From Ylistrum balloti (Eukaryota), in assembly GCF_031769215.1 (NCBI RefSeq), contig NW_026782835.1, forward strand, positions 1 to 60,977: a stretch of DNA of 60,977 nucleotides, in the 5' to 3' direction. Below are positions 6,965-55,564 of this stretch, piece after piece. A program made the translations under genes and the position numbers. Positions within the stretch are counted from its first letter, which is position 1. Every line of letters starts with the position of its first letter. The notes beneath the pieces are model-generated. The model worked only from the letters and a program-made list of their open reading frames with translations, did no database searches and was not told the DNA's origin.

Positions 6965-7954
6965 ATGAGTACTGTTTTTCTTTTTCCAGGACAAGGTGCA
7001 CAGAAACAGGGTATAGGATTATCGTTATATGAGCATTCCACCACAGTGCAACATTTCTTCTCTCGTTGCTCTGACATCATACAGCAAGACATTACAAAGC
7101 TCCTGTTTGAATCCTCTGAAGAAGAGCTACAAAAAACAGAAAACACACAGATAGCCATTACCGCTGTAAACATAGCCACAGCATTAGTTATAAAAGACAT
7201 GGGCATTGAGGCAACCTCACTCGCTGGTTTTAGCTTAGGAGAATACTCGGCCTTAGCTCTTGCAGGTGTAACAGGAGAAGAAGAGTTGTTTTCTATGGTG
7301 CTGCAGAGAAGTAAGATTATGGAAAGTTGTAGCAGGGAAGCAGAGAGAAAATTAGCAAAAGAAGAAGGTGGAGAACCACGCTTAGGCATGACTGCTATTG
7401 TGGGCATGCATCCGCACACAATAGAAACACTACTACATGAATGGGGTGACACTCATGTATATCTTTCCATGTATAATAGTCCCACGCAGGGTGTGTTAAG
7501 TGGTACACAAAAAGCACGAGAGGATGCTTCACAATTTCTACTACAGAAGGGGGCAAGAAAAGCCATTCCTCTTAAAGTAGGTGGTGCGTTCCACAGCTCC
7601 TTCATGCAAGAAGCACGCACTATCTTTGAAGCAAGCATAAAAAACATTGAGTTTAGAGACCCAAGCATCCCCATATATTCAAATGTAACAGCCGATAAGG
7701 TAGTGTCTGGGAGGACATTAAAATCTCTCTTCCTCGATCAAATAGTACAACCAGTACAATGGATACAAGAAGAAAATGCAGTGTGGGAACAAGAACATCC
7801 AACGCAGGTATTCGAAGTAGGTCCTGGCGGGGTACTAAGTGGTTTATGGAAGCAGTGGAAGCGTGATAAAACAGACCTACATATCCCAGACAGCATCTCG
7901 CTAGATTCATACGAAAAAATTCATGAGTGGATACAAAACAATAACAGTAATTGA
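6965..7954 (+). CDS. fabD: Malonyl-CoA:ACP transacylase
   Basis: FPGQGAQ, TQIAI, GFSLGEYSAL (GxSxG), GAFHS, EVGPG.VLSGL. Confidence 0.92.
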   Translation: MSTVFLFPGQGAQKQGIGLSLYEHSTTVQHFFSRCSDIIQQDITKLLFESSEEELQKTENTQIAITAVNIATALVIKDMGIEATSLAGFSLGEYSALALAGVTGEEELFSMVLQRSKIMESCSREAERKLAKEEGGEPRLGMTAIVGMHPHTIETLLHEWGDTHVYLSMYNSPTQGVLSGTQKAREDASQFLLQKGARKAIPLKVGGAFHSSFMQEARTIFEASIKNIEFRDPSIPIYSNVTADKVVSGRTLKSLFLDQIVQPVQWIQEENAVWEQEHPTQVFEVGPGGVLSGLWKQWKRDKTDLHIPDSISLDSYEKIHEWIQNNNSN

Positions 7955-7962
7955 TTATTTTT

Positions 7963-7971
7963 TGATATAAT
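7963..7971 (+). promoter_or_regulatory. Possible extended -10 promoter upstream of fabG
   Basis: TGATATAAT (TGn-TATAAT) about 30 nt upstream of the fabG ATG; AAAGGA SD-like sequence follows. Confidence 0.35.
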
Positions 7972-7999
7972 TATATATAGCTGTATAAAAGGAAGAACA

Positions 8000-8740
8000 A
8001 TGTTGCTAAAAGACAAACATGCATTTATTACTGGAGGTTCGAAGGGCATAGGTTTAGGAATATGCAAACGCTTTCTCGAACATGGACTGCGTTCTCTTGC
8101 TTATTTTTCAAGGACAGAAAGCCCAGAACACGCTGTGCTTTTAGAAACAGCAGAGCAATATCAATCCTCTGTCTACCACTATCAAGGAAGCGTCGATGAT
8201 GAGAAGGCCTTACAAAATTCCATTGCAGACTTTAGTACTAAATCAGGATCGTTAGACATACTTGTAAACAACGCAGGAATAACAAAAGATAAGCTTATTA
8301 TTGGTCTTAGCCTCGAAGACTGGGACTCAGTAATAAATACAAACCTAAAAAGTGTTTTTATCGCAAGTAAGTCTGCAACACAGATTATGCTAAAGCAACG
8401 GAGGGGAGTAATAGTAAATATAAGCTCAGTAGTAGCAATACACGGCAATGCGGGGCAATCAAACTACTGTGCCTCTAAGGCTGGTGTTATTGGTTTTACA
8501 AAGAGTCTAGCCCGCGAAACAGCTAAGCGCGGAGTACGCGTAAATGCAATAGCACCTGGATATATTAAAACTGAAATGACAGATAAAATACATGACACAT
8601 ATAAGGAAAAACTACAGGAGCTCATCCCTCTTGTAAGAATTGGGGAAGCAGAAGATATTGCAGATCCTTGCGTGTTTCTTTGCTCGGATATGTCGCGTTA
8701 TATTACAGGTGAAGTACTTGTAGTGTCGGGTGGTATGTAG
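8000..8740 (+). CDS. fabG: 3-oxoacyl-ACP reductase
   Basis: TGGSKGIG, LVNNAGITKD, GQSNYCASKAG (YxxxK), NAIAPGYI.TEMT. Confidence 0.93.
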   Translation: MLLKDKHAFITGGSKGIGLGICKRFLEHGLRSLAYFSRTESPEHAVLLETAEQYQSSVYHYQGSVDDEKALQNSIADFSTKSGSLDILVNNAGITKDKLIIGLSLEDWDSVINTNLKSVFIASKSATQIMLKQRRGVIVNISSVVAIHGNAGQSNYCASKAGVIGFTKSLARETAKRGVRVNAIAPGYIKTEMTDKIHDTYKEKLQELIPLVRIGEAEDIADPCVFLCSDMSRYITGEVLVVSGGM

Positions 8741-8752
8741 GGGGAATTAACC

Positions 8753-10012
8753 ATGAAAAGAAAACGGCTTGTAATCACGGGGCTTGGTGCAGTGTGTCCC
8801 TCTGGAAACTCTGTGCCAGAACTATGGAACTCTCTTAGCAATGGAAGAAGTGGTATAGATACATTACCTGAACCCCTGCTTTCAGAACTAAGCGACAACC
8901 CTACCAAATATGGGGGGGTAGTGAAAAACCTTCAACCTGAAACATTCCTAGAAAAAAAACTCTTGCGAAAAATGGACAAGCTATCTATCTATACCACAAA
9001 GGCAGCTATTGAATGCGTGGAATCCAGCTGTATGAAACTCAATCAATCTAAAAGATACAGATGCGGTTGCGTTATGGGTGTTGGTATTGGTGGGATGGAA
9101 AGCTACAACAACGGAGTAATTGCGTACAAAGACAGGGGGTGGAAAAGCATCCCTGTTATGACCATATCGAAAATTATACCAAATTCCACGAATTCTAATA
9201 TCGCATTACATTTTCCTTACTTAAATGGCATTAACTACTCTGTAAACACAGCTTGTTCCTCTAGCTCAGATGCAATAGCAGCAGCTGCACGGCATATATT
9301 ACTAGATGAGGCAGATTTTATGTTAGCAGGAGGTGCAGAAACATCGCTTACTGGCTTTGGTGTCTCTAGTTTTAATGTACTCCATGCCTTAAGCACAAAA
9401 TGGAGCCACGATCCCACGAAGGCTTCACGTCCCTTTGACAAAGATAGAGACGGCTTTGTCATGTCGGAAGGAGCTGCGGTTATAGCATTGGAATCACTAG
9501 AACATGCAGAACAAAGAAACGCCCCCATACTTGCTGAGCTCGTTGGTTTTGCAAACACAAACGACGGATACCACTACACAGCCCCCGATCCTGATGCACA
9601 TGGAATAGTACGTGCTATGCATTGCGCGCTCGAGCAAGCTGCAATAGACCCGTCTGCCATCGATTACATAAACGCACACGGCACTTCAACACCCACAAAC
9701 GACCCCCTTGAAACACAGGCAATCAAAAAAGTATTTAAGGAATATGCTTATACAGTAAAGATAAGCTCTACTAAATCTATGACAGGGCACTGTGTAGGTG
9801 CAACAGGGGCTATTGAAGCAATAGCGTGCATTAAAGCAATAGAAAAGCAATTCCTCCCCCCTACTATCAATTTAGATACTCCAGATACAGACTGCGACTT
9901 GGACTACATTCCACATAAAGGTATAGCACACAAGGTGGAATACGCCATGTCTAATACTTTAGGGTTTGGAGGACATAATAGTGTGCTTATCTTTAAGAGC
10001 TACCAGCAGTAG
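8753..10012 (+). CDS. fabF: 3-oxoacyl-ACP synthase II
   Basis: TACSSS (Cys), NAHGTST (His), KSMTGH (His), SNTLGFGGHN; SRPFDKDRDGFVMSEGA. Confidence 0.94.
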   Translation: MKRKRLVITGLGAVCPSGNSVPELWNSLSNGRSGIDTLPEPLLSELSDNPTKYGGVVKNLQPETFLEKKLLRKMDKLSIYTTKAAIECVESSCMKLNQSKRYRCGCVMGVGIGGMESYNNGVIAYKDRGWKSIPVMTISKIIPNSTNSNIALHFPYLNGINYSVNTACSSSSDAIAAAARHILLDEADFMLAGGAETSLTGFGVSSFNVLHALSTKWSHDPTKASRPFDKDRDGFVMSEGAAVIALESLEHAEQRNAPILAELVGFANTNDGYHYTAPDPDAHGIVRAMHCALEQAAIDPSAIDYINAHGTSTPTNDPLETQAIKKVFKEYAYTVKISSTKSMTGHCVGATGAIEAIACIKAIEKQFLPPTINLDTPDTDCDLDYIPHKGIAHKVEYAMSNTLGFGGHNSVLIFKSYQQ

Positions 10013-10127
10013 CCTTGTTTATAGAAAGAACATTGCATAGTAGCTGGAGCTGGCCATAGCTACTCACTGACCAACAACTATACTCTTTTATTTACTTTTA
10101 TTTTATACTCTTTGGTGTTTGTAGCTT

Positions 10128-12002
10128 TTATTTTCTTTGTCTTTGTGTTTTCTTTACCGTTGTGTTTTTTGTTTTACTGCTTGTTTTGCTATTTGAAGTA
10201 CTTGCTGGTCTTATTGGCTTTACTTCGTGGGTAAAGAATATATTATTCCGAACAGCAAAAATATTGCTTGGATCTAGTTTAGTTTTTACCGCTATAAGTG
10301 CTTCTTTTGTAACTGAATCGTATACAGAATCAACGAAGTCTGCCCTTAACTTTCCGATGCCGTGATGGTGGCTAATGGATCCACCAGCATTCAATATCTC
10401 CTGGCGGATAGTTTTTTCTAATAGAGAAAATTTATTCTCTGGATTTTTTACATGAGAAAAATTAAGTCCATGCGTAAAGTAAATGCACACACCTGTAGGA
10501 TAAATCTGCGTAATTCTTGTAGCAACAAAAGAAATGCCGGGGAACCTATTTCTTGTATGCAAATCTTGTGCTTTTCGCTTTACTGCATCACAGACTTTCT
10601 CTATATCATTCCACAGCACTGTGGTTTCATATGTTTCCCCAAGAATATAATAATCTAGAAAGAAATCACGTATATATGCAATAGCGTATGTAAGTGCGTA
10701 GCCGAGTTTACCGTTTGAACCCCCACCAAACACACCATTGTACTTCTTCGCTAACTTCTTCATCATCGTTTTCTGGTGTACTACCTCTTCTTTTGTTCCT
10801 TCAAACACAATAGTTGCTGCAGACATTTTCTTGAGATTAAATCGCTTAAGTACCTTAAGTATAAAAATCTGCAACGCACGAACTATCTTTTTCAAAAAAC
10901 CTGCTTCTGCCTTAAGTGCCTGCCCAAAGCGAAACTGTATATTGTCCATCAATCGTATGCTTGCGGGGTACGTCTGAAGATCTTTCATGTCTTTTAGAAA
11001 TTGTATGCCAGTGGAAAAGTCCTTAAAAATAATAGACTCGTATCCTTGTTGTTTTGGGACTTTGCGAATTTTTAACGTTGCTCTTGTTATTATCCCTACA
11101 TTTCCTTCGCTACCAAACAGTAAACGGGATATTTGCATGCCTGATGAGGTTCTTGGAAACATATGCTGAGATTCAATAATTCCTTTTGGGGTAACCATAG
11201 TAAATCTATCTACTATATCTTCTATATTTCCATATCTATTTTTTTTCATACCGCTTGCATTAGTAGCAATCCACCCTCCTACAGTGGAAAATTCTATACT
11301 ATCAGGTTCATGACCGGTTGTGTATCCGCTTTTCTTAAGAAATTGCTCTAGTGTTTCTCCCGTAATACCTGACTGGACTGTTACATAATGGTTATTGGTA
11401 TCTAGCGAGAGTATTTTTGTAAGCCTAGAAGTGTCTACAACGACTATCATACGTTTTTCATTTGTTGGAAGAGTAAGAGAAGAAGACACGCTCGTACCTC
11501 CTCCGTAGGGAACAAGGCATACATTGTACTTCTGTGCTAGTGTTACAATAGAAAATACCTCTTCCTCCTCAATGCAATAAAACACCGCATCAGCATACCT
11601 TTCCATACCACCGCAGTACAGCACCTTCATTACTTCATCGGCAGTAGTTTGCCCATGACTATGAATAAGCCTTTCCTTATCTTCAAAGCTTAGGCGATTC
11701 TTATGCTCTTTCTGCAGCTCAGATACAAAAAGCTTGTTTCTTTTTGGTGGGGGGAGCTGCACCTCCATTTCTGGTCTTTTTATATCAGAAAATGGATGTT
11801 GCAATACTTCATTCGCAAAGGGTATAAGCCGTGCCATCTCATAGCCTGACACAGGATAGCGCGAACCACTTACGGTTACCTTGCCGTTATCCTTAAGAAT
11901 AAACTTAGTATCTTTGTAACCCCATCTATGTTCTGCTTTTACATGAGGAAAGATTACATCTTCTCTTTGTAGTGATTTTTCTTTGAATGCTTTATCTTTC
12001 AT
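10128..12002 (-). CDS. Alkyldihydroxyacetonephosphate synthase-like FAD-linked oxidoreductase (eukaryotic AGPS type)
   Basis: WGYKDTKF, GGGTSVS, GYTTGHEPDSIEFSTVGGWIATNASGMKKNRYGNIED, GSEG..GIIT, PASIRLMDN, GET.ET, GGSISHHHGIGKLR follow the motif order of animal AGPS closely. Confidence 0.85.
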   Translation of the reverse strand: MKDKAFKEKSLQREDVIFPHVKAEHRWGYKDTKFILKDNGKVTVSGSRYPVSGYEMARLIPFANEVLQHPFSDIKRPEMEVQLPPPKRNKLFVSELQKEHKNRLSFEDKERLIHSHGQTTADEVMKVLYCGGMERYADAVFYCIEEEEVFSIVTLAQKYNVCLVPYGGGTSVSSSLTLPTNEKRMIVVVDTSRLTKILSLDTNNHYVTVQSGITGETLEQFLKKSGYTTGHEPDSIEFSTVGGWIATNASGMKKNRYGNIEDIVDRFTMVTPKGIIESQHMFPRTSSGMQISRLLFGSEGNVGIITRATLKIRKVPKQQGYESIIFKDFSTGIQFLKDMKDLQTYPASIRLMDNIQFRFGQALKAEAGFLKKIVRALQIFILKVLKRFNLKKMSAATIVFEGTKEEVVHQKTMMKKLAKKYNGVFGGGSNGKLGYALTYAIAYIRDFFLDYYILGETYETTVLWNDIEKVCDAVKRKAQDLHTRNRFPGISFVATRITQIYPTGVCIYFTHGLNFSHVKNPENKFSLLEKTIRQEILNAGGSISHHHGIGKLRADFVDSVYDSVTKEALIAVKTKLDPSNIFAVRNNIFFTHEVKPIRPASTSNSKTSSKTKNTTVKKTQRQRK

Positions 12003-13150
12003 TGTTTTCTCCCGTATCGCTTATGCGCATCTGAAAATGTATCGTCTATCACTGCGCAAAACAAGGAAAGTTCTAAGCACAGTGTTGTTGCGGCTATAAT
12101 CTCTGCTAGTTTCTTACTTGAATTCTCCCCACTGTCACATCCTATGACCCGTAGATTTCGTTTCTGAGACAGCAGCCGGGTACCTCCCCCTACCGTACCT
12201 ACCGTAAGAGATGGTAGGCGTACAATAATTTCTGCCCCCTCGCAGTCCTGTGCTTCTCCTATAAAGAGTGTGCCAAGTGCATTCTCTGCTGTGCATGCTA
12301 CATCCTGACCCATAGCTAAATATATTGCAGCTAAAGTGTTTGAAAAATGCAACTGCACCCCAAAAAGACCCGTAAGAGCATTAAAAGATGCCATACGTTG
12401 AAAGGATTGTACAAGTTTTTTGCTTGTGGCGTTAAGTAGTCGTACTATTGTTTCTTCTTTTATTACAGAACGTGCAATAACAAAATGTCCCCTTCCATGT
12501 AGTAGCGAGCGATAACTTGCTTTTTTGTCGCTGTTTAACCCAGACTCTACAAAGCATTCCCTTACATCAAAGTGCTTGGTCACGTAGTCCATTACACCTT
12601 TTGCAGCAATGGTTACCATATTCTGACCTGCTGCATCCCCTGTTGTAAAAAACAATTCGAGAACTACACTGCGGTAGAATATTATTTTTTTTATCTCAAT
12701 AAGCTTAGCATATGAAGAGGTAGCTTCTGCGCTTTTTTTTATTTCTTCATAATGTGCATCTACAAAGTCACAGAACTTCCTTGTGACCTCCATGTCCTCG
12801 AAGAAGAATGCCGGTGCTCTGCTAAGATGCTGGGAAATATAGTATGTATTAATACCCATTACAGAGGTTGCAAGCATACCTCGCGTAAGAGAGTACACAA
12901 GCGCGCCTTCAACTGTGCATACTGGTAGTTTGAACTCCCCATTCGCATAATCGCCATGTACCACCAGTGGTGATGCTACAGCTGTTGGTATAGAGGTATA
13001 CCCAATATGCTGTTCTATAATCCCCTCTAGCTCTTCTTCTGGATCAAAGAGATTTTTAGAGTAATCTACTCCAGTGCTTTCCTTTAACCACTGTACTCTT
13101 CTTTCTCTATCCTCTGCTTTCCACCCCCGCGGGGGTTTTCGCCTATTCAT
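11999..13150 (-). CDS. hmgA: Class I HMG-CoA reductase (NADPH type)
   Basis: EQHIG...P, TVEGALV (catalytic Glu), TGDAAGQNM, SDKK (catalytic Lys), GQDVA (catalytic Asp), LTVGTVGGGT, ELSL, C-terminal AH; ATGA overlap with the AGPS gene. Confidence 0.85.
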   Translation of the reverse strand: MNRRKPPRGWKAEDRERRVQWLKESTGVDYSKNLFDPEEELEGIIEQHIGYTSIPTAVASPLVVHGDYANGEFKLPVCTVEGALVYSLTRGMLATSVMGINTYYISQHLSRAPAFFFEDMEVTRKFCDFVDAHYEEIKKSAEATSSYAKLIEIKKIIFYRSVVLELFFTTGDAAGQNMVTIAAKGVMDYVTKHFDVRECFVESGLNSDKKASYRSLLHGRGHFVIARSVIKEETIVRLLNATSKKLVQSFQRMASFNALTGLFGVQLHFSNTLAAIYLAMGQDVACTAENALGTLFIGEAQDCEGAEIIVRLPSLTVGTVGGGTRLLSQKRNLRVIGCDSGENSSKKLAEIIAATTLCLELSLFCAVIDDTFSDAHKRYGRKQ

Positions 13151-13271
13151 ACATCATACTCCATTTTGCTTATATCGTTACGCTGTGTATTACTTCTCAT
13201 ATTACTTCTATATATGTATTATAGTATATTTTCGTTTACTGATTAATGCGCGTATCTATTACAATATACGT

Positions 13272-15566
13272 ATGGTAATATCACAGGAATATGCACGCGA
13301 TTTTTATGCAAAATTGCAAATGAAATACAAAAAACTGAGGGCAGAGTTCAAAAAACCTCTTACTCTTTCTGAAAAAATACTCTTTACACACCCCTTTTCT
13401 GAAATAAACTACAATGCTGTAGTTCGGGGTAAGGACCACATGTATTTTCGTCCAGACAGAGTAATAATGCAAGACGCTACAGCTCAGATGGCATTACTGC
13501 AGTTTATGCAATCAAAACTCTCTACCATCACCCTTCCTGCTAGCGTGCACTGCGACCATCTTATTCTTGCGAAAAGAAATGCGTTGCTAGACCTTAGCAA
13601 TGCAAAAACACAGAACAAGGAGATATACGATTTTCTTCTCAGTGCGTGTAGAAAATACGGCTTAGACTTTTGGGAACCGGGCGCTGGTATTATTCATCAG
13701 GTAACCTTAGAAAACTATGCCATTCCTGGTATGATGATTATTGGTACCGACTCGCACACTCCCAATGCTGGTGGTATCTGTTCCATAGCTGTGGGGGTGG
13801 GTGGTGCAGATGCAGTCGATGCACTTGTGGGTATGCCCTGGGAACTACTTATGCCAAAAATAATAGGGGTACACTTAAAGGGCACTGTCTCTCCATGGTG
13901 CTCGCCGAAAGACATCATATTAAAATTAGCTGGAGAGCTTACTGTAAAGGGGGGCACGGGGTATATCATAGAGTATTTTGGAGAGGGTGTCCATTCACTG
14001 TCCTGTACAGGAAGAGCAACGATAGGCAATATGGGGGCGGAAGTAGGAGCTACTACATCTATATTCCCTATGGATGACAATATCCTAGAATACATTACAC
14101 TTACCGAAAGAAAACATGTTGCTGACATAGCGGTTAAGCATGCTGAGATATGTAAAGCAGACGACGAAGTGCTACAGAACCCTCATTACTACTACGATAA
14201 AGTAATTAACATAGACCTTAGCACGCTAGAACCCTATATCAATGGGCCATATTCGCCAGATAGAGCCACCCCTCTTTCTGATTTTGCACGATTTATTCAA
14301 GCAGAGAAGTATCCAGAACACATAAGTGCTGCACTCATTGGGTCCTGCACCAACTCTTCCTATGAGGATTTAAGCAGAGTGTACTCTCTCCTTACCCAAG
14401 CAAAGAAGAAAAAATTAGCTCTTCGGACACCACTATGGCTCTCTCCCGGCTCTGAAAACATCTATCAGATCATAAAGCACAATGGCTATCTTACGCTGTT
14501 TGAGCAGTTTGGCACCCATGTACTAGCAAACGCCTGTGGTCCCTGCATTGGGCAATGGAAGCGCAGTGACATTAATGAAAATGATACAAATTCCATTATC
14601 AATTCATTTAATAGAAACTTTGCGAAGCGGGCTGATGGTAACCCCAATACACATTCCTTTGTAAGTTCACCAGAAATTGTAACTGCTATGGCATTGTCTG
14701 GTTCTCTACTCTTTAATCCCATGAAAGACAGTCTTATAAACAGCGACAAGGAACCTGTACAATTAAGCCCGCCTGATGCAGCGCCCCCTGCGCCTAGAGA
14801 ACTCCTACATACCATCTTTGGCAGTAAACCTAAGGGGCTTATTACAGCAAACGAAGATGAGATAGCACGGAAAAAACATATTGTATCCATTTCTCCCGAC
14901 TCTGAAAGACTACAAGAATTACAACCCTTCGAAGCATGGACACAAAAAAATTTCACACAGCTCTATCTACTTATAAAAGCAAAAGGAAAATGTACCACTG
15001 ATCATATTTCTATGGCTGGCCCATGGCTACGCTATCGTGGTCATCTTGAAAATATATCTAAAAACCTGCTTATAGGAGCGGTAAACGCTTTTAACGATAA
15101 AACAAACCACATATACAACCCCTTTACACACACATACCAGGAAATAGAACTCGTTGCACAGCACTACAAGATACAGAAGAGCAACCTTATTATTGTGGGA
15201 GACGAAAACTATGGAGAGGGCTCATCTCGAGAACATGCAGCATTGGAGCCGCGTTTTATGGGAGTAAAAGTTGTACTAGCAAAATCCTTTGCCCGCATCC
15301 ATGAAACAAACCTCAAAAAGCAGGGTATACTCCCCTTGTTGTTTATTGACCCAACAGACTACGATCGTATTCAAGAAAGAGATAGTATTGACGTACTTCG
15401 TGTAACAGAACTGCTTCCTCAATCTCGACTAGAACTTGTATTGCACCATGACAATGGAAGTACACACTCTTTTGAAGTAACACACACATTAAACGCAACT
15501 CAAACAGAATGGTTTAAGCAGGGTTCGGCTCTTAATATGATAAAAAATACACTGAGTTCTGCATAG
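13272..15566 (+). CDS. acn: Aconitate hydratase, mitochondrial/Bacteroidota type
   Basis: RPDRVIMQDATAQMALLQF, HCDHLI, GTDSHTPNAGG, GSCTNSSYED, NACGPCIGQW, SFNRNF, KCTTDHISMAGPWL, NYGEGSSREHAALEPR. Start moved from 13074 to in-frame ATG 13272 because the longer ORF overlaps hmgA. Confidence 0.93.
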   Translation: MVISQEYARDFYAKLQMKYKKLRAEFKKPLTLSEKILFTHPFSEINYNAVVRGKDHMYFRPDRVIMQDATAQMALLQFMQSKLSTITLPASVHCDHLILAKRNALLDLSNAKTQNKEIYDFLLSACRKYGLDFWEPGAGIIHQVTLENYAIPGMMIIGTDSHTPNAGGICSIAVGVGGADAVDALVGMPWELLMPKIIGVHLKGTVSPWCSPKDIILKLAGELTVKGGTGYIIEYFGEGVHSLSCTGRATIGNMGAEVGATTSIFPMDDNILEYITLTERKHVADIAVKHAEICKADDEVLQNPHYYYDKVINIDLSTLEPYINGPYSPDRATPLSDFARFIQAEKYPEHISAALIGSCTNSSYEDLSRVYSLLTQAKKKKLALRTPLWLSPGSENIYQIIKHNGYLTLFEQFGTHVLANACGPCIGQWKRSDINENDTNSIINSFNRNFAKRADGNPNTHSFVSSPEIVTAMALSGSLLFNPMKDSLINSDKEPVQLSPPDAAPPAPRELLHTIFGSKPKGLITANEDEIARKKHIVSISPDSERLQELQPFEAWTQKNFTQLYLLIKAKGKCTTDHISMAGPWLRYRGHLENISKNLLIGAVNAFNDKTNHIYNPFTHTYQEIELVAQHYKIQKSNLIIVGDENYGEGSSREHAALEPRFMGVKVVLAKSFARIHETNLKKQGILPLLFIDPTDYDRIQERDSIDVLRVTELLPQSRLELVLHHDNGSTHSFEVTHTLNATQTEWFKQGSALNMIKNTLSSA

Positions 15567-43891: not shown

Positions 43892-44015
43892 TCGCTTATG
43901 CTACAGAATATAGGCAGCAGAATATAGGCAATTAAGTATAAAAAGAGTATAAAAAATAAAAACAAGCATGCTACTGCATGCTTGCGTAAATATTAAATAT
44001 GTAGAACGAGTTGTA

Positions 44016-44282
44016 TTATTTAATGATTGCTAATACATCCTTGTATGCAAGAACTAAATGCTCTTCAGAATCGATTTCGATTTGAGACCCTGAATACTTA
44101 TCGTAGAGCACCTTATCTCCTACTGAGATGTTTTTGATTTCATCACTATTACCTAACGCTACAACTGTTCCAGTCTGGGTTTTTTCCCTTGCTGTATCTG
44201 GAATAATAATACCGCTTTTTGTTTTGCTCTCCTCTTGAGCTATTTTTAACAGAACCCTATCTCCAAGGGGTGACACTTTCAT
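44016..44282 (-). CDS. groES: Co-chaperonin GroES
   Basis: MKVSPLGDRVL, TKSGIIIPDTAREK, G.VVA.G, VGDKVLYDKYSG; AGGAGG SD. Confidence 0.96.
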   Translation of the reverse strand: MKVSPLGDRVLLKIAQEESKTKSGIIIPDTAREKTQTGTVVALGNSDEIKNISVGDKVLYDKYSGSQIEIDSEEHLVLAYKDVLAIIK

Positions 44283-44417
44283 CTTTTCCTCCTAATATAT
44301 TTTTTGATTATTTATTAATTGCTCTTTACTTTATCATACAAGAAAACACCTATAGTGTCAATATCCATGTAGAAGAGAATTATGTATGAAAGTGTACTAA
44401 ATAATCGATAAAACCAA

Positions 44418-44446
44418 TTGACAATAAATATATAAAAGTGTACCAT
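44418..44446 (+). promoter_or_regulatory. Transposase promoter (probably leaderless transcript)
   Basis: TTGACA, 17 nt, TACCAT, then 6 nt to ATG 44453. Confidence 0.55.
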
Positions 44447-44452
44447 ATAAAT

Positions 44453-45339
44453 ATGGATACATCACTAATAGATTTTTTAGATACTTTCAAAGATGATAAA
44501 ACCTGTGAAGAATATTTTATTAATCGTAGATTCCCTGATGGCGTACACTGTGTTTATTGTAACAATAAAAATGTGTATAAAATAAATTCAAAAAAGAAAT
44601 GTCAGCAGTTTAAGTGCTCGGAATGTAAGCAAAGGTTTAGTGTTATCACAGGCACTATATTTGAAGGAACAAAGTTAGGATTACAAAAATGGTTTTTAGC
44701 ATTTCATCTTATATCTACTTCTGCTAAAGGTATTAGTAGCATTCAATTATCTAAATATTTGAAAACGACACAGCGTACAGCATGGTTTATATTACATAGA
44801 TTTAGAGAAATAGCACAAGATAATTTTAAGATAATGGGTAATGTAGAAATGGATGAGACCTTTATAGGTGGGAAAGAGAAGAACAAGCATGTAAGTAAAA
44901 AGAAGGGGTATCATGGTACAGAAGGGAAAACTGCAGTAATGGGAGCAATATCACAGGAAACGAAACAAGTAGTAGCATATCCTGTAAAGGAAGCTAGTTA
45001 TAGCAGTATAGAAACATTTAGAGAGCATCATATAGAAAAAGGAAGTATTATATAGCGATGATTGTAGCGCCTATAAAGGACAAGCATTATTTAGAGTAAA
45101 CCATAGTGCGAAAGAGCATGTCAGAGATGAGCATATACATACTAATACGATAGAGAGCTTTTGGGCTATTATAAAAAGAGGATATATAAGAGTACATCAC
45201 TGGTGGGGTAATAAACATGCAAAACGATATACAAATGAATTTACATATAGAGCTATAATAATAAAGGTGTTTCTATTGCAAATCTTTAATAAAAACCATT
45301 GGTAAACGGCCAAAATATAGAGTATTAACACATGGCTAA
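44453..45339 (+). pseudogene. IS1595-family transposase, frameshifted
   Basis: Zn ribbon CVYC..C.EC, VEMDETFIGG. A 2-bp loss in a TA run near 45050 gives a premature TAG; the other frame continues SDDCSAYKG..HTNTIESFWAIIKRG...HHW...H..RYTNEFTYR, with further shifts near the 3' end. Confidence 0.9.
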
Positions 45340-45448
45340 GAAGTCACAAAGATTTAAGATAAATATGTCTCTCGATAACTTTTTAGATAGTGTAAAAGAT
45401 AAGGCAAAGACAGAAGTAACTAACAAAACAAGAAATTATCACAGATAA
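45332..45448 (+). CDS. Small hypothetical ORF inside the IS1595 element
   Basis: 38-aa ORF MAKKSQRFKINMSLDNFLDSVKDKAK... overlapping the transposase end; not in the supplied ORF track. Confidence 0.3.
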   Translation: MAKKSQRFKINMSLDNFLDSVKDKAKTEVTNKTRNYHR

Positions 45449-45486
45449 GAATAATAACAAAATAACATTAAATAAAAGGTTATCAC

Positions 45487-48939: not shown

Positions 48940-49920
48940 TTATGTGCATAAAGATACTATAACTTCTCTTACATCTTTTGTATCGCGTAATGCATCCGCT
49001 ACCACTAATGCCTGCTTACTATTGCCGCAAAAACAAACAAGAGCTCCACCTCCACCTGCGCCACTCATCTTTGCTGCAATAGCCCCAGCGCGTATAGCGC
49101 ATTGCAATGCATGTTCTAATACATCGCTACTTAATCCTATATCTCGTAAAGTAGTGTGTATGGACTCTACAAGTATGCTAAATTCTTCTGTGTGCTTTTC
49201 TTGTATGTCCTGCTTCGTAAGCAATGCTATAGCCCTATTACTATCCGCAATAAGTTTTGATATATACTCTACACGCTGCAGCGCTGATTGCGCTCGAGCA
49301 ATAAGTGCTGCTACTTGCGTACTGCGAGGATACGATGCAGCCACTACTGCTAGATGTATGTGTGACTGGTAGCAGTGAAAAGAGGGGAAGCGTCCCTGTG
49401 TATTTGTATCACGCACTCTTTCTAGTACAAGGGCGCTTTCTTGCATGCTTAATGCGGTATCAATACCCGAAGAGGGTGAGTGAAAAAAATCCTCAAAAAG
49501 TGTCGCGAGTCGCCATAGTGTTGCGTGCTCTTCTGCGACGTTCTTTGTTGAGCTGTCTATGGTATACTGCGTACAGTACTGAGCATGTCCGTTATACTGA
49601 AGTATGCAGCTAGCCAGCGCGGTCGATAATGCTGCTGAAGAACCAAAACCACTTTGCTTGGGAATACTACTTGTAAGCTCTATACTTGCTGTTGGCACCT
49701 TTAAGTGTTCAGTTCTGCATACCACAGAAATATGTTCTAGAAACTTACGTAGTACTACATCTCTTTTTTTGAAACGAAGCTGCTTTCCATCTACACATAC
49801 TACTGCTTTCAAAACATTGGGAAGTGGGAGACCCAATGCTGAGGCACCATGAAAAATCAGGTGCTCACCAAATAATAGCACTTTTCCTCTCATCTCTGCA
49901 TGGATGGGTGTTGTATGCAT
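48940..49920 (-). CDS. mvaK1: Mevalonate kinase
   Basis: GKVLLFGEH, IPKQSGFGSSAA (GHMP), H..SSGID, KMSGAGGGG; operon context. Confidence 0.85.
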   Translation of the reverse strand: MHTTPIHAEMRGKVLLFGEHLIFHGASALGLPLPNVLKAVVCVDGKQLRFKKRDVVLRKFLEHISVVCRTEHLKVPTASIELTSSIPKQSGFGSSAALSTALASCILQYNGHAQYCTQYTIDSSTKNVAEEHATLWRLATLFEDFFHSPSSGIDTALSMQESALVLERVRDTNTQGRFPSFHCYQSHIHLAVVAASYPRSTQVAALIARAQSALQRVEYISKLIADSNRAIALLTKQDIQEKHTEEFSILVESIHTTLRDIGLSSDVLEHALQCAIRAGAIAAKMSGAGGGGALVCFCGNSKQALVVADALRDTKDVREVIVSLCT

Positions 49921-49955
49921 GACTCTCTTTATTATACTAGTTATTATACTAGCAT

Positions 49956-50984
49956 CTAGTATTCTCTACGAAAGCCTCCAGAGAATCGTATGACTTCGTA
50001 CTTCGCCTTTGCGTCTTCTTTGTGTGGGTGCATATCGTGTTTTTTACTGCTATGAAGAATACCCACCCCGCACTCATTTCCAGCGCCACTTGCCTTCCAT
50101 GTCAGTACTTGGGTGGGAGGAGATATTTCTGCACATACTGAGATATACTCTCCTAAGCGTAGTCCTAGGTTCCTTAGCGCATCGATGCTACGCAGTAACG
50201 TACGCATCTCTCTTGCCGCAATGCATTGCTGTAGTGTGGCATCGTAGTCTCTGCGAAGTGTAGTGTAGCTGTGAAACGCTCTTTGCTTCCAGTGCTTATA
50301 ATGCGTAAGGGCATCTCTGCTAGAAACGCTGTTCTCTGTGTTATTCCAGCGTATCCATGTAAAATTCTGCAGGTATGAAACTGCTACCGTACTTAATACA
50401 TTTCTGTTTCCCTTGTCAGATGCTGTGCGAGAAATAAGATTGCTGCCTCCTGTTGCTGATGCGTATACATCGTAGCCACTTCCTTGCCCTCCCTGCCACA
50501 GATAGTGCACACATTGCGCGCCTTCTCGGAGTATGTCTGCTTCCGCAACTGGATCTAAACCGTGAAGTAACATATGTGCAGCTGACACGAGTATTGATGC
50601 ACATGCACTGGAGCCAAGTCCTAGTTTTTGATTACTTGTAGCAGAAAAAAGCGACGATGTATCTACTTCTAAAAAGAGGTATTCGTCCTCAGATAATATG
50701 TTTTTTGCATACTTATTCTGCTTATTATAGAGAGTAGGTAGTATGGTGTCAGCGCATCGCCAAAAATCGCAGTCGCTATGCCTGTGATATTGTATGCACA
50801 TTCCCTTATATCTGCTTTGCATGCATACAGGTGTTGTAGCATCTTTCTTTTTCCGTACTTGAACTGTAAGATACGAGCGTGGTTCTACTGCAAAGCACAG
50901 ACCAGCCCCATCGCTTTCTGTAAGAATGTATTCCCCACACAACAGCATATTAGAAGCTACGCTGTACTGGCGCTTATGAAACAT
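49956..50984 (-). CDS. mvaK2: Phosphomevalonate kinase
   Basis: ASNMLLCGEY, KLGLGSSA, GSGYDV, KASGAGNECG; operon context. Confidence 0.8.
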   Translation of the reverse strand: MFHKRQYSVASNMLLCGEYILTESDGAGLCFAVEPRSYLTVQVRKKKDATTPVCMQSRYKGMCIQYHRHSDCDFWRCADTILPTLYNKQNKYAKNILSEDEYLFLEVDTSSLFSATSNQKLGLGSSACASILVSAAHMLLHGLDPVAEADILREGAQCVHYLWQGGQGSGYDVYASATGGSNLISRTASDKGNRNVLSTVAVSYLQNFTWIRWNNTENSVSSRDALTHYKHWKQRAFHSYTTLRRDYDATLQQCIAAREMRTLLRSIDALRNLGLRLGEYISVCAEISPPTQVLTWKASGAGNECGVGILHSSKKHDMHPHKEDAKAKYEVIRFSGGFRREY

Positions 50985-51930
50985 CTACACTACTTGCGCC
51001 CTTTCCAAGTTTACATAGCGTATATTCAATATTGGGGAGCTGCTCCTTTACTTTTTGTAATATTGTGTTAACATCCTTCTCTTCTACCAAGTACTTTACC
51101 TGTGGTCCAGCATCCATAGTTTCCCATACTGATACTCCATGCATGCGGAGTTCGTTAGCTATCGAGATAAGTTGCAGGCTTGTCGGTTGCCAATACACTA
51201 CAGGTTTCATGCTTGCAATCATAACTGCATGCATTGCTCTGTAGCTCGCTCCGGCAAGAAATCCTAATTGCTCCAAATCTTTATTACGTATAGCATGGAG
51301 CATGTCGCGCGTTAACATCGTATTATAACGTAGCCATTCTGAATAATAAGGAGAATGTTTTTTGCAAATCTGCATAGCTTCTCGAGAGGTAATTTTTTTC
51401 TTCTCAGAACTTACAATAAAGACAATAACACGTAAATCTGGCCAGTACTGCTCATTCTCTATTTGAGAGGCATATTCCATGCCCTGCTTCCAAATAGTAA
51501 ACCCCGAAAAAATAGATCTGCATGCAGAACCAGAACCAAGACGTGCATACTGAGAAAGCTCAGTCTTAGGCACAGAAAGGCCAAAGATATTAACCAGTCC
51601 CACCGTGAGAGCAGCAATACCCGAAGCTGAACTCGCAAAGCCTGCTCCTGTAGGAAAAGAATTATACGATGTTATTTTTACATGCTCATATGTGCGGTTA
51701 CTGTTCCTTTTTATTTGATTGAGAGTTGGTGCAATAATATCCAAGGAATGCTGTTCCCCATTCAACATAAGGCTATCTTTATTTGACTTTTCTATTTCTA
51801 CCGAAGATTTAAGCGTATCGAGGGTTATTGCTATGTTTGTGCACGCTGGTATATTTATTCCATTATTTTCCTTTCCCCAGTATTTAATTAAAGCAAGAGA
51901 GGGGCCTGCGCTGGCTAGTATCTTCTTCAT
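50974..51930 (-). CDS. mvaD: Diphosphomevalonate decarboxylase
   Basis: LALIKYWGK, FPTGAGFASSASG, ARLGSGSACRS, SREAM, TMDAGPQVK. Confidence 0.93.
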   Translation of the reverse strand: MKKILASAGPSLALIKYWGKENNGINIPACTNIAITLDTLKSSVEIEKSNKDSLMLNGEQHSLDIIAPTLNQIKRNSNRTYEHVKITSYNSFPTGAGFASSASGIAALTVGLVNIFGLSVPKTELSQYARLGSGSACRSIFSGFTIWKQGMEYASQIENEQYWPDLRVIVFIVSSEKKKITSREAMQICKKHSPYYSEWLRYNTMLTRDMLHAIRNKDLEQLGFLAGASYRAMHAVMIASMKPVVYWQPTSLQLISIANELRMHGVSVWETMDAGPQVKYLVEEKDVNTILQKVKEQLPNIEYTLCKLGKGASSVDVS

Positions 51931-53111
51931 AGTTTTTTTTCTGTATGTATAGTTCTTTTGTTATGGAATTTTTTATGCCCATACTGTATACCTATATCCA
52001 CCAACGCCAATATGGCAGCTAGGTTTTGTGCAATCCCCAACGCCGCAGCGATGCAGTTGAGCTGCTGGGCATGAATATCTTTACCGTGGTTTATACTCAT
52101 GATGTGTCGACTCCATTCTGCAAGAGGGTGTGATGTCCCACCACCTACGGTAGCAAGTACCGAAGGCATCTGCAGTACCCCAGAAAGCATACCCTCACTA
52201 TAACTAAAACGCGAGAGTGGTTGGTAATGCGAGTGGTGTTGCGTGCCTTTGCGTATAGCCGAAGCAAACGCGTGGAACTGTGCAGCTAATGCCCGTGTAT
52301 CATTTCCGGTAACCAATGCTAACCCATTCACTGCATTCATAACCCCCTTATTATGCGTAACAGCTCTATAGACATCTTCCTCTGCCCACTTACTCATCAT
52401 CTCTATTCTCTTTGCTAATTCCTTGCCACTGTAACGTGAAGATCGAAGGCGTGAGCTTGGAATTGTAAACTCTGCCTCTGCTATTCTCTCAAGACTGTAA
52501 TTACTAAGAATAGATGCAAGACATGTTCCTCCACTTAACTCTTCTAGCAGTGGTGCTAGTGCTTCGGCTGCTGCGGTAACTATATTGGCCCCTAAAGCAT
52601 TACGTACATCTACACTAAAATAAAATACAAACATACCATTAGGTAAGCGTCTATACTCAGAAGACCTTAGGCCTCCTCCTCGCATATGCATGCGCAATAG
52701 TAACTCCATCAATCTATCCTGTATTTTTTTCCATTCTTTTCGTAAGACTTCTTCTCCTGCACTACTTACATCTAGTAGCGCTATTTGTGCGGTCTGTAGT
52801 GCTGGGCCACACTTCGCCTGTATTCCTTGTTCGGTATCCAGTATACTTGCAGTGTAATTCGCCGCCGATATTACTGACGCTTCTTCAGTGGCAACTGGAA
52901 CATGGACATACTCGCCGTTTACATACACATTCCGTACTATTCCTATGGGTACACCAAAGATACCCACAGGTATTTCTATCATAGTATCAGCTAGTGCAAT
53001 GAAATCATCGTGTGGGAGAAGGTAGTTCTTGATCTTCTCACTATACACCGATGTGTAGTCACTGTTTCCATTATGTACCATCTCGGTGAGGCATTCTATT
53101 CTCTCTTGCAT
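51927..53111 (-). CDS. mvaA: Class II HMG-CoA reductase
   Basis: VPVATEEASVI, RGGG, DVRNALGANIV, THNKGVMN, TGNDTRA, TVGG, QNLAA..AL...GIQ.GH. Confidence 0.9.
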   Translation of the reverse strand: MQERIECLTEMVHNGNSDYTSVYSEKIKNYLLPHDDFIALADTMIEIPVGIFGVPIGIVRNVYVNGEYVHVPVATEEASVISAANYTASILDTEQGIQAKCGPALQTAQIALLDVSSAGEEVLRKEWKKIQDRLMELLLRMHMRGGGLRSSEYRRLPNGMFVFYFSVDVRNALGANIVTAAAEALAPLLEELSGGTCLASILSNYSLERIAEAEFTIPSSRLRSSRYSGKELAKRIEMMSKWAEEDVYRAVTHNKGVMNAVNGLALVTGNDTRALAAQFHAFASAIRKGTQHHSHYQPLSRFSYSEGMLSGVLQMPSVLATVGGGTSHPLAEWSRHIMSINHGKDIHAQQLNCIAAALGIAQNLAAILALVDIGIQYGHKKFHNKRTIHTEKKL

Positions 53112-53186
53112 TGTCTTCCTACGAAATGAAGCTCTTAGTTTTTTTTGAGAATACTTGTTTCTATTATTAATATAGTACGTCCTTTA

Positions 53187-54305
53187 CTAATTCCAAGTAG
53201 TATTACTTCTTAGTACCTGCTTGTTTACTTTTTCTGGTAATACCAAACCCATTGCTCTGCTGTAAGAAAGAAGAGCGAACTGGAGATCAGCATTCATCCA
53301 AAAAGGAAGAGCGGATACTTCTTTTACATTTCTTGCCTTAGATAAGAGCATAAACTGTTTTAATTGCTGTGTGAGCATTGATATGTACTCGCGCAATACC
53401 TCTATGCTTTTTGCTGCCGCTCTTACTATGGGCAACGCAATCCCAACAGCTTTACTCCCTAGCACAAGACTGATAAGCACATCGCGGGCGTTGCGTATAC
53501 CACCCGATGCAAGGCGTCCTTCCATGCCATAACTCAAAAGTAGTAGCAGTACGCTGGGGTGCCCCCAGTGATCATAGCTTGCAAAGGCCTGCTCTTGCTG
53601 ATAATGGTATCCTTGTGCATTATTCATAAGCTCTATTTTTGCCCAATTACTCCCACCTGCACCCGCAATATCTACATACCGCGCTCCTATTCCTAACAAG
53701 TACTGCATTTCAGACGGATGCAGTCCCATGCCTGTCTCTTTTACAATAACAGGTACTGTACTCTTTGCTATGTATTCTCTTAGCGCTTCCTGTATCCCCT
53801 GAAAATTTCTTGCACCGTGCCTCTGACACAGTTCTTGTGCGGGGTTTAGATGAAACACTAGTGCATCCGCCTGCAGCTCTGAGAGCACAGAATCTAAGAC
53901 TGTAGTATTTTTCATATCAAGGAGTTGCACAGCCCCTAGGTTGGCAAGTAATGGCACGGATGGCGCTATCTTTTTTAACTGAAATTCAGCAAGTAAACGC
54001 GGGTTCTCTAACAGCACACGTATAGAACCAAGTCCTACAGGAATACCAAATTCCTCAGCTACCTTTGCAAATTTCTTATTCATACTATACGCTTCTTCAG
54101 AGCCTCCAGTCATGCAAGATATAAATATAGGATAACGTATCTTCTGTCCAAGAAATTCACTGCTAGTATCTATTGCTTCGTAGTCTAATTCGGGAAGAGA
54201 ATAGTGAGACAGAAAAATAGAAGAAAAAAAGCTCTTATTGCTTTCTACATCACTATTAATACAGATATCTAGGTGTGCTTTCTTTCTTGATATAATATCA
54301 TTCAT
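53187..54305 (-). CDS. fni: Type 2 isopentenyl-diphosphate isomerase (FMN-dependent)
   Basis: RKKAHL, ISCMTGG, GLGS, ANLGAVQL, HLNPAQE, IVKETG.G, DIAGAGGSNW, ASGGIR. Confidence 0.94.
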   Translation of the reverse strand: MNDIISRKKAHLDICINSDVESNKSFFSSIFLSHYSLPELDYEAIDTSSEFLGQKIRYPIFISCMTGGSEEAYSMNKKFAKVAEEFGIPVGLGSIRVLLENPRLLAEFQLKKIAPSVPLLANLGAVQLLDMKNTTVLDSVLSELQADALVFHLNPAQELCQRHGARNFQGIQEALREYIAKSTVPVIVKETGMGLHPSEMQYLLGIGARYVDIAGAGGSNWAKIELMNNAQGYHYQQEQAFASYDHWGHPSVLLLLLSYGMEGRLASGGIRNARDVLISLVLGSKAVGIALPIVRAAAKSIEVLREYISMLTQQLKQFMLLSKARNVKEVSALPFWMNADLQFALLSYSRAMGLVLPEKVNKQVLRSNTTWN

Positions 54306-55564
54306 GGTGACTGGCTATACACCCTGTACCCATCTTCTCGTATCCTCGAAAGGTAGAATGACTTTGATTGTATTGTATTGAGATCTTTTTCATTAGGGGG
54401 GATAGCATCGTGGTGCTGCATCCACGTACTATATACTTGGGTTTCAACATCGTTGCCAGTTTGTAATTGATCACACAAAGACCACGACTGGATAACTTCA
54501 GGCGCTTGTTGTGCAACGCGGCCAGGAATTACCATAGAAGTATTTCCCGACCCATAGCTCAGTACGAGCACTTTTTTGCCTACTATGCTTTCTTGTACTG
54601 CTTCGTACTGCTTACTAAGCAGATACCCCATAGAAAAAAAGAGAGAAGATGTATAGGTGTTACCAATCCATGATATTACCTCAGAGGCTTGCTGTATATG
54701 TTTATTATCTAGAAACTCTTCTATTTTTTGAAGAGACCACTTCAATTTTCGCTTAAAGATATATTCTAGTGCTATTGTCGACATAGTAGCAAAGGGAAGG
54801 TGGAAAAAGAAGTAGTGGGTCTCTTCGCATATCTCGGTAATACTTTTCCCTACACTTTCAGCGCAATCTAATAGTGCATTGTACACAGAATCAAGATAGC
54901 ATTTCATAGAATACTGACCACGCACCTTGGCAGTACTGCTGTTATTGGGGCGAAAAAAATCGTCTGTGTCTTCTGAGTACAGTCCCACATTGTGAATATC
55001 AAGAGAGAGTAGCCTTGGATGTTTTTTTAAGTATACAGAGACAGATCCAGCACCCTGTGTTATTTCTGCAGTGGTATTTGCTTCATAACGTGCAATATCA
55101 GTCATGCTTACCAGCGCAGTTGATGCCCTCTTGGCGCTTGAAATCATACCAAGACATTGCATAATGCTTATAACCCCTCCAGCACAGGCATGCTGTGTCT
55201 GATACGTACTTACATTAGAGGGAATACGTATACCCACCTTTTGTAATATTCCTATTATATATGCTGATATGGGTTTTGAAGCGTCTACTGATGTTTCTGT
55301 TGCGGATACTACAAAACGGAGTGCTTCCAATGATATATTCTGCAGTAGATCTAGTACGGATTCAGTTGCTAAGCAAACAGAATCCTGCCAACTTTGGGTA
55401 ATTCTTATGCATTTCTGCCCTGTAGTTTTTACCGCATTTTGCATCCTAGCAAACGTTTCCGGATACTCTTTGAAAGCTTTTTCTAGTAAAAGTTGAACTG
55501 GCACTCTGGGTTTGGGTATGTAGTACCCAATATTGTCAATCCCTACTGTCTCTTTACTGATCAT
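54302..55564 (-). CDS. mvaS: Hydroxymethylglutaryl-CoA synthase
   Basis: VGID.I.YY.P, TETSVD.SK, HACAGG (Cys), TQGAG.V, FHLPF, GNTYTSS, SYGSG. Confidence 0.92.
   Translation of the reverse strand: MISKETVGIDNIGYYIPKPRVPVQLLLEKAFKEYPETFARMQNAVKTTGQKCIRITQSWQDSVCLATESVLDLLQNISLEALRFVVSATETSVDASKPISAYIIGILQKVGIRIPSNVSTYQTQHACAGGVISIMQCLGMISSAKRASTALVSMTDIARYEANTTAEITQGAGSVSVYLKKHPRLLSLDIHNVGLYSEDTDDFFRPNNSSTAKVRGQYSMKCYLDSVYNALLDCAESVGKSITEICEETHYFFFHLPFATMSTIALEYIFKRKLKWSLQKIEEFLDNKHIQQASEVISWIGNTYTSSLFFSMGYLLSKQYEAVQESIVGKKVLVLSYGSGNTSMVIPGRVAQQAPEVIQSWSLCDQLQTGNDVETQVYSTWMQHHDAIPPNEKDLNTIQSKSFYLSRIREDGYRVYSQSP

Follow-up and report, generated by a model that had tools for sequence, protein, structure and literature searches.

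A bacterial HMG-CoA reductase-like gene coupled to alkyl-DHAP synthase is predicted to form an operon for non-isoprenoid alkyl ether lipids

The stretch of DNA analysed here, referred to below as the window, is contig NW_026782835.1 over its full length of 60,977 nucleotides (nt), filed in the assembly of the scallop Ylistrum balloti. On its minus strand it carries a gene for a homologue of class I hydroxymethylglutaryl-CoA (HMG-CoA) reductase (HMGR), followed by a gene for a homologue of alkylglycerone-phosphate synthase (AGPS), the enzyme also known as alkyl-dihydroxyacetone phosphate (alkyl-DHAP) synthase. The two genes probably constitute a single, coupled operon that serves the committed steps in making non-isoprenoid alkyl ether lipids, and the upstream enzyme would be a reductase of the FcrA type and not a working HMGR. 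FcrA is a class I HMGR homologue that converts fatty acyl-CoA of C14 and longer into the alcohol with NADPH (Grossi et al. 2025, ISME J, PMC11948995). A first-pass annotation, made from the sequence alone, had suggested that the class I enzyme might be a repurposed acyl-CoA reductase supplying the alcohol used by AGPS; FcrA-like substitutions at two of three pocket positions (the third being ambiguous), together with linkage to AGPS across phyla, support this suggestion.

In the mechanism that we propose, the FcrA-type enzyme would reduce long-chain fatty acyl-CoA, giving fatty alcohol, through the four-electron, NADPH-dependent mechanism of HMGR, whose catalytic Glu, Lys, Asp and His are retained, and AGPS would exchange the acyl group of acyl-DHAP for that fatty alcohol. 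Acyl-DHAP would be supplied by an acyltransferase, and a ketoreductase would turn alkyl-DHAP into 1-alkyl-glycerol-3-phosphate. Candidates for these last two activities stand in the same cassette in most other phyla; the spirochaete lineage of the window presumably carries their genes at another site.

Results

The reductase-like gene and agps overlap

The unit consists of the following features, where aa stands for amino acids:

11999..13150, minus strand: fcrA-like gene, 383 aa, class-I-type HMGR homologue (list of open reading frames, Pfam)
10128..12002, minus strand: agps gene, 624 aa, alkyl-DHAP (alkylglycerone-phosphate) synthase homologue (list of open reading frames, Pfam, PDB)
11999..12002, minus strand: ATGA stop/start overlap of the fcrA-like gene and agps (read from the sequence)
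12009..12013, minus strand: Shine-Dalgarno-like GGGAG, 6 nt 5′ of the agps ATG (read from the sequence)
13159..13162, minus strand: Shine-Dalgarno-like GGAG, 8 nt 5′ of the fcrA-like ATG (read from the sequence)

The TGA stop codon of the fcrA-like gene (12001-11999) shares bases with the ATG of agps (12002-12000). Both the ATGA overlap and a Shine-Dalgarno sequence of the class I gene had been reported in the first-pass annotation and were read again in the sequence, in which a purine-rich motif of this kind precedes either start; the overlap implies translational coupling of the two genes. Among metagenome contigs that belong to the closest matches of the window, the junction between the reductase gene and agps is also a 4-nt overlap in L005; the two genes overlap by 11 nt in L001 and are 6 nt apart in L002. 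A scan of positions 9800-13600 for promoters and terminators gave counts near the shuffled expectation, and within this region no terminator-like site was present on the minus strand 3′ of agps.

At 13074-13150 the 5′ end of the fcrA-like gene is shared with a mechanically called open reading frame on the opposite strand, which begins with GTG and encodes an aconitase (13074-15566). Because the Pfam match of the aconitase begins at residue 115, its real start probably lies further downstream, which would leave a divergent intergenic region.

The HMGR-like protein keeps the catalytic residues and differs in the substrate pocket

The 383-aa protein covers the whole Pfam profile PF00368 (HMG-CoA_red, 1.8e-81), with the domain starting at residue 16, and in the PDB it matches best an archaeal class I HMGR, 6hr7 (4.7e-59). 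As the first-pass annotation had stated, the catalytic residues are kept: Glu81, Lys209, Asp283 and His376 correspond to human Glu559, Lys691, Asp767 and His866. In an alignment of 85 rows, made up of the 80 loci of the neighbourhood scan described below, four other fetched loci and the window protein, the Glu, Lys and Asp are invariant and the His is found in 84.

When compared to human HMGR, FcrA has its catalytic residues kept, a Glu at Ser684 (in the N. pharaonis FcrA), a small residue at Lys735 (printed as Lys795 in that paper) and a bulky aromatic residue at Leu862 (PMC11948995). In the window protein, the position of Ser684 is occupied by Glu202, and Glu is present there in 82 of the 85 relatives; the position of Leu862, four residues before the catalytic His, is occupied by Phe372, with Phe in 69 and Trp in 16 of the relatives. 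The residue at the position of Lys735 depends on the alignment, being Met253 according to MAFFT or Arg252 according to HMMER against 6hr7. Across 81 relatives this column contains mostly Gly, Ala, Phe or Cys and in 12% Lys or Arg, so that the family as a whole has lost the conserved Lys735. The canonical class I trio of HMG-pocket residues is absent from the window protein, which carries Glu, Met (or Arg) and Phe instead of Ser684, Lys735 and Leu862, while Arg90, the equivalent of human Arg590, is kept. A Streptomyces HMGR whose gene is part of an mvk-mvaD-pmk-fni-hmgr-hmgs cluster served as a control; its residues at the three positions are Ser, Lys and Leu, and 6hr7 also has Leu at that of Leu862. 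The presence of Glu202 and Phe372 at positions that distinguish FcrA, with the third position ambiguous, argues for an enzyme of the FcrA type.

The NCBIfam model TIGR00533 was tried as a test for true HMGRs and rejected. The window protein scores 220 bits against a cut-off of 441.8, and the genuine Streptomyces HMGR, at 286 bits, falls short as well, so the cut-off does not discriminate.

The AGPS homologue retains the active-site residues

The 624-aa protein contains the Pfam domains FAD_binding_4 (PF01565) and FAD-oxidase_C (PF02913), preceded by an N-terminal extension of the AGPS type. It matches guinea-pig AGPS (4bby) at 2.7e-139, with query residues 25-586 on chain residues 94-656 and roughly 50% identity, and Dictyostelium 2uuu at 1.6e-74. 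Arg419, Tyr578 and the His615-His617 loop in guinea-pig numbering, which we take to form the AGPS active site with the roles assigned in the structural literature, align to Arg350, Tyr508 and His545-547 of the window protein. Their equivalents are kept in all AGPS partners of the reductase loci, which again favours a reductase that delivers fatty alcohol to AGPS. Two AGPS subtypes occur among these loci, with 45-65% and 25-28% identity to the window AGPS respectively, and the catalytic residues are kept in both. The window AGPS is not unusually close to eukaryotic enzymes, since hundreds of AGPS sequences from bacteria resemble it equally well or better (50-65% identity). The window protein ends in a Lys/Ser/Thr-rich C-terminal tail of ~35 aa (10128-10235, minus strand) that is found neither in the L005 homologue (592 aa) nor in the guinea-pig enzyme.

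The reductase gene is paired with agps in many phyla

We searched one genome per GTDB species with the family alignment and kept 80 loci. AGPS adjoins the reductase in 60 of them, and in 59 it lies directly downstream on the same strand. A pairing that recurs in this way is far beyond chance, and the adjacency noted at first pass is not peculiar to this genome. The 60 loci belong to 11 named phyla, namely Fidelibacterota (Marinimicrobia), Fibrobacterota, Lentisphaerota, Ignavibacteriota, Calditrichota, Bacteroidota, Planctomycetota, Verrucomicrobiota, Gemmatimonadota, Pseudomonadota (including Legionellales) and Spirochaetota, and to unclassified metagenome-assembled genomes (MAGs). For 11 of the 20 loci that lack AGPS, the contig extends less than 2.3 kb further downstream.

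The usual form, found in 49 of the 80 loci (10 named phyla and unclassified MAGs), is a tight four-gene cassette encoding the reductase, a PlsC-type acyltransferase (PF01553, HX4D motif present), AGPS and a short-chain dehydrogenase/reductase (SDR) that is classical and of full length. The four functions would match the four steps by which the AGPS route of mammals and Myxococcus reaches 1-alkyl-glycerol-3-phosphate. The two-gene form, with reductase and AGPS only, is that of the window, of the Spirochaetia loci L006, L007 and L081, and of the metagenome contigs L001, L002 and L005; in a Spirochaetota MAG (L056) an acyltransferase stands between reductase and AGPS. The best database matches of both window proteins share contigs. 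This sharing and the fixed place of the gene beside AGPS in many phyla are further reasons to regard the enzyme as a putative FcrA.

Some loci of the scan showed particular arrangements. In a Parachlamydiales MAG (L076:8792-13385), a member of the reductase clade without AGPS follows LpxD and is itself followed by a gene of the fatty-acid-hydroxylase family (PF04116) that overlaps the reductase stop, and then by a FadL-type transporter. This is another lipid context for the same reductase clade, and such a context even without AGPS also points to an FcrA-type function. In some Marinimicrobia (L003:9653-10471 and equivalents) the SDR frame opens right after the AGPS stop, and the Rossmann motif of the SDR lies 5′ of the first ATG, GTG or TTG, a pattern that varies across loci. 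Readthrough of the in-frame stop between AGPS and SDR in L003 was considered and discarded, since it is inconsistent across loci; a start-codon or gene-calling issue is the probable explanation.

The AGPS-linked reductases form one clade of a broad family

An exhaustive search of representatives returned 2309 relatives, and the FcrA-type pattern is present in nearly all of the best 150. Several HMGR-like relatives are fused to AMP-binding domains of the fatty-acyl-AMP-ligase type and to carrier (PP-binding) domains, an architecture that would serve fatty-acid activation and reduction. Read as Rosetta-stone fusions, they argue for the FcrA-type interpretation of the window protein. Among the fusion proteins as a whole (P0247, P0249, P0251-P0254, P0289 and P0300), further partners of FcrA-like domains are an APH/EcKL-type kinase (numerous proteins of about 800-1500 aa), PilZ and DUF3419; one guess is that the kinase partner is a fatty-alcohol or lipid kinase.

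A quick IQ-TREE tree of 103 rows was calculated, in which canonical class I HMGR is represented by two sequences, class II sequences root the tree through a very long branch, and Pb-FcrA, the N. pharaonis FcrA and archaeal and eukaryotic HMGRs have no row. The AGPS-linked proteins, that of the window included, form one clade, with a Shimodaira-Hasegawa-like approximate likelihood ratio (SH-aLRT) support of 100. It stands apart from the HMGR of the Streptomyces type, from the Trp-bearing representatives of the length expected with a Lad (alkyl-carrier) domain (about 500-550 aa), which are placed elsewhere in the tree, and from the kinase-fused and ligase-fused groups. A tree constrained to set all 100 FcrA-like rows against canonical HMGR and class II had a log-likelihood 25.9 higher than that of the free search and a P value of 0.84 in the approximately unbiased test, on a set with two canonical class I sequences and no characterised FcrA. 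Both the support for the clade and the fact that its split from canonical HMGR is not rejected are compatible with, and favour, an FcrA-type identity.

A link between FcrA and AGPS has been only speculated, from co-occurrence, from an AGPS gene located nine genes from Pb-FcrA in Ca. Promineifilum breve and from a PlsC-like gene that adjoins fcrA in Coxiella (PMC11948995). On the contigs that encode the Promineifilum/Ardenticatenales AGPS we found no HMGR-like gene near AGPS within reach, and a protein search seeded with the Legionellales protein gave no Coxiella-named match.

Two more distant members of the family were noticed in other surroundings. On a Sinorhizobium medicae plasmid (L092:3546-8255), a divergent HMGR-like gene with 31% identity and Phe at the Leu862 position is flanked by genes for acyl-CoA carboxylase beta, biotin carboxylase and biotin carboxyl carrier protein, next to an MmgE/PrpD gene and with no mevalonate genes nearby. 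In the Vibrio 'class I HMGR' (L091:4863-6125 on a Vibrio fluvialis plasmid, and on Vibrio second chromosomes) the three pocket positions are occupied by Asp, Thr and Phe. It stands alone beside molybdate-transport genes, so that it, too, looks like an FcrA-type protein and not like one of the mevalonate pathway.

The window is bacterial and has a separate mevalonate operon

The gene content of the window is bacterial and comprises thyX, fab genes, tricarboxylic acid cycle genes, dnaX, recR, a type IV secretion ATPase, lgt, a bacterial tRNA-Ser and a mevalonate operon. Among genomes, the reductase has its nearest relatives in MAGs of Spirochaetia (52% identity). The window is thus a bacterial contig within the Ylistrum balloti assembly, bacterial over the whole of positions 1-60977. 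The public record of its AGPS (NCBI, UniRef) is a truncated 479-aa model entitled 'alkyldihydroxyacetonephosphate synthase, peroxisomal-like [Ylistrum balloti]', so that the gene of a symbiont or contaminant is filed as an animal gene.

Outside the unit, and 36 kb from the fcrA-like gene, the window contains:

48940..55564, minus strand: mevalonate operon (Pfam)
51927..53111, minus strand: class II HMGR of the mevalonate operon (TIGR00532, 227.7 bits; model cut-off of 259.95 not reached)

The operon encodes HMG-CoA synthase, an FMN-dependent protein resembling type 2 isopentenyl diphosphate isomerase, the HMGR, diphosphomevalonate decarboxylase and two GHMP kinases. The placement of a class II HMGR within a complete mevalonate operon had been recognised at first pass and is confirmed here, and the existence of this separate pathway is one more argument for an FcrA-type role of the class I homologue.

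As also noted at first pass, fabD, fabG and fabF (6965-10012, plus strand) converge on the pair. Only the closest relative, L005, shows the same convergence; it is missing in L001 and L002, the other Spirochaetia loci with gene calls that were inspected. A functional link was rejected on these grounds; the arrangement was taken as local synteny, and the fab adjacency is probably incidental. Elsewhere in the window, at 44000-46300, the G+C content goes down to 0.31 and an IS1595-family transposase fragment accompanies a DNA methylase, which is probably an insertion remnant.

Discussion

Several observations weigh against the proposal that the pair is an FcrA-AGPS operon. Nine assessable loci (Planctomycetota, Chlamydiota and others) have no AGPS within 10 kb. 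The window protein is without the N-terminal Lad domain that characterised FcrAs carry, and Arg252, which HMMER aligns to Lys735, may mean that a basic residue remains near the pocket. Placement with FcrA relies on signature residues and not on a tree shared with characterised FcrA. A DHAP acyltransferase and an alkyl-DHAP reductase (acyltransferase/SDR) were looked for in the 61-kb window and none was found.

It would be very unlikely, in our judgement, for the gene to encode a true, redundant class I HMGR that makes mevalonate, with an AGPS adjacency that is either meaningless or raises the supply of isoprenoid alcohols for isoprenoid ether lipids. The full-length PF00368 match, the catalytic residues, the conserved Arg90 and perhaps Arg252 would fit such an enzyme, as would the fact that public pipelines name all the relatives hydroxymethylglutaryl-CoA reductase. 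However, the equivalents of Ser684 and Leu862 are replaced in the manner of FcrA, the family shows no conservation in the Lys735 column, the gene of the window lies 36 kb from the mevalonate operon, and across more than ten phyla the gene is accompanied by those for AGPS, acyltransferase and SDR and not by mevalonate genes. Moreover, AGPS takes free long-chain alcohols, whereas the products of the mevalonate pathway are diphosphates. The isoprenoid part of the first-pass annotation, which had considered a boost of isoprenoid-alcohol flux and ether lipids with isoprenoid chains, finds no support, as the contacts to the HMG carboxylate are replaced and the mevalonate operon has its own class II HMGR. 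A true HMGR also fits poorly with the published finding that bacteria having the HMGR-like homologue alone lack the mevalonate pathway, and that the one member for which this is reported, Pb-FcrA, neither reduces HMG-CoA nor is inhibited by simvastatin (Grossi et al., PMC11948995).

The enzyme could instead be a thioester reductase that feeds AGPS from another substrate (acyl-ACP, that is, acyl chains on acyl carrier protein, from the fab genes, or branched, hydroxylated or shorter acyl groups), or that stops at the aldehyde. The lack of Lad, the Phe in place of Trp at the Leu862 position, the separation of the AGPS-linked clade from the Lad-type, Trp-bearing representatives, the fusions of related domains to carrier proteins, which suggest carrier-bound substrates in some lineages, and the fabD-fabG-fabF genes adjacent in the window and in L005 are in line with this idea. 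We nevertheless hold it to be unlikely, because the other Spirochaetia loci that have gene calls do not show the fab adjacency, the unit has neither a carrier domain nor a carrier gene, and AGPS needs an alcohol, so that a full four-electron reduction is to be expected. Least probable of all would be that no membrane ether lipids are made, the AGPS homologue being an ordinary FAD-linked oxidase or dehydrogenase that acts on the product of the reductase, or the products being signalling or storage lipids and not bulk lipids of the membrane. AGPS does belong to the FAD-linked oxidase superfamily, the Myxococcus AGPS gives only minor amounts of plasmalogen according to a preprint, and the window is without acyltransferase or SDR. 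Against it stand the AGPS-specific Arg419, Tyr578 and HHH loop, which are kept in every partner, the identity of about 50% to the structurally characterised mammalian AGPS over 560 residues, and the usual cassette, which brings exactly the acyltransferase and the ketoreductase that the AGPS route needs.

The bacteria that make non-isoprenoid alkyl glycerol ethers, and the routes that they use, are still being worked out. Current metagenome screens look for homologues of ElbD, Agps and Ger singly (PMC11868695; 2026 sponge preprint), and the papers that look for agps in bacteria (these two and PMC13012113) make no mention of an HMGR-like neighbour. In the literature that we searched, no HMGR-AGPS operon was found described and FcrA as a name appeared in no paper other than that of Grossi et al. 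Hence the "undescribed route" of the first-pass annotation was overstated, in that the kind of enzyme and a possible FcrA-AGPS link were already published in 2025; what is added, as far as the searched literature goes, is an operon that is both tight and conserved and that provides strong genomic evidence for the link that Grossi et al. had put forward as speculation. The same pairing in at least eleven phyla points to a widespread bacterial route to alkyl ether lipids, as predicted from the sequences.

The fixed reductase-AGPS operon, usually with acyltransferase and ketoreductase, offers a compact four-gene unit for heterologous reconstitution. The "hydroxymethylglutaryl-CoA reductase" annotations in this clade are probably wrong, a point that bears on inferences of the mevalonate pathway from MAGs, and the scallop "peroxisomal-like AGPS" entry in public databases is a bacterial gene. 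We lean, by a narrow balance, towards a broader view in which the cassette (in Spirochaetia, the reductase-AGPS pair) is a self-contained and horizontally mobile 1-O-alkylglycerol pathway, with an HMGR-fold enzyme replacing a reductase of the FAR (fatty acyl-CoA reductase) type. If this is true, the cassette would be a major bacterial source of such ethers (non-isoprenoid monoalkyl glycerol ethers) in the water columns and sediments of the sea, the producers being Marinimicrobia, Verrucomicrobiota, Planctomycetota, Ignavibacteriota and animal-associated spirochaetes, and every HMGR-like gene of these groups, at present labelled as a mevalonate enzyme, would carry a wrong annotation.

Comparison with known systems

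With canonical class I HMGRs (archaeal, eukaryotic and from Streptomyces) the window protein shares the fold, the Pfam family, the catalytic tetrad and the NADPH-binding motifs. It differs from them in the replacement of Ser684 and Leu862, in the unconserved Lys735 and in the lack of mevalonate linkage, and it clusters apart from the Streptomyces enzyme. Like FcrA, it combines a class I HMGR core and the catalytic Glu, Lys, Asp and His with an acidic residue at Ser684, an aromatic one at Leu862 and a family-wide loss of Lys735, and it is a second HMGR-like copy beside a real mevalonate pathway. Unlike the characterised FcrAs, it has Phe and not Trp at the Leu862 position and no Lad, a domain that is specific to certain FcrA (PMC11948995). 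In addition, characterised FcrA is linked to wax-ester synthase, whereas the window gene is coupled to AGPS, and its relatives head a four-gene cassette in most phyla.

Among the routes to bacterial ether lipids, the anaerobic PlsA-PlsR (Ger) system for plasmalogen and ether synthesis shares with the unit the class of product, ether-linked glycerolipids, but uses unrelated proteins and chemistry (an existing ester is converted), and none of its genes is present in the unit. The ElbD pathway of myxobacteria is likewise bacterial and oxygen-compatible, leads to alkyl glycerol ethers and starts by reducing an activated fatty acid, and the fusion of some FcrA-like domains to AMP-binding and carrier domains is reminiscent of it. 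In ElbD, however, FadD, ACP, a FarA-type reductase and a PlsC-like domain are joined in one protein, while here the proteins are separate and AGPS is used. The closest counterpart is the AGPS route itself, represented by peroxisomal FAR1, GNPAT, AGPS and alkyl-DHAP reductase in mammals and by the operon MXAN_1676-1675-1674 in Myxococcus xanthus (PMC13012113, and Lorenzen et al. 2014 as cited therein). The catalytic residues are the same, and so is the predicted succession of alcohol supply, acyl-DHAP formation, exchange of acyl for alkyl and keto reduction, with all four functions encoded together in the relatives of the window. Where the mammalian and Myxococcus route relies on a FAR activity, the alcohol step is here assigned to an HMGR-fold enzyme, and the operon of the window would cover two of the four steps. 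Judged from its genes, the unit would thus follow the known AGPS pathway with one variation, an HMGR-fold reductase standing where the FAR-type enzyme would be.

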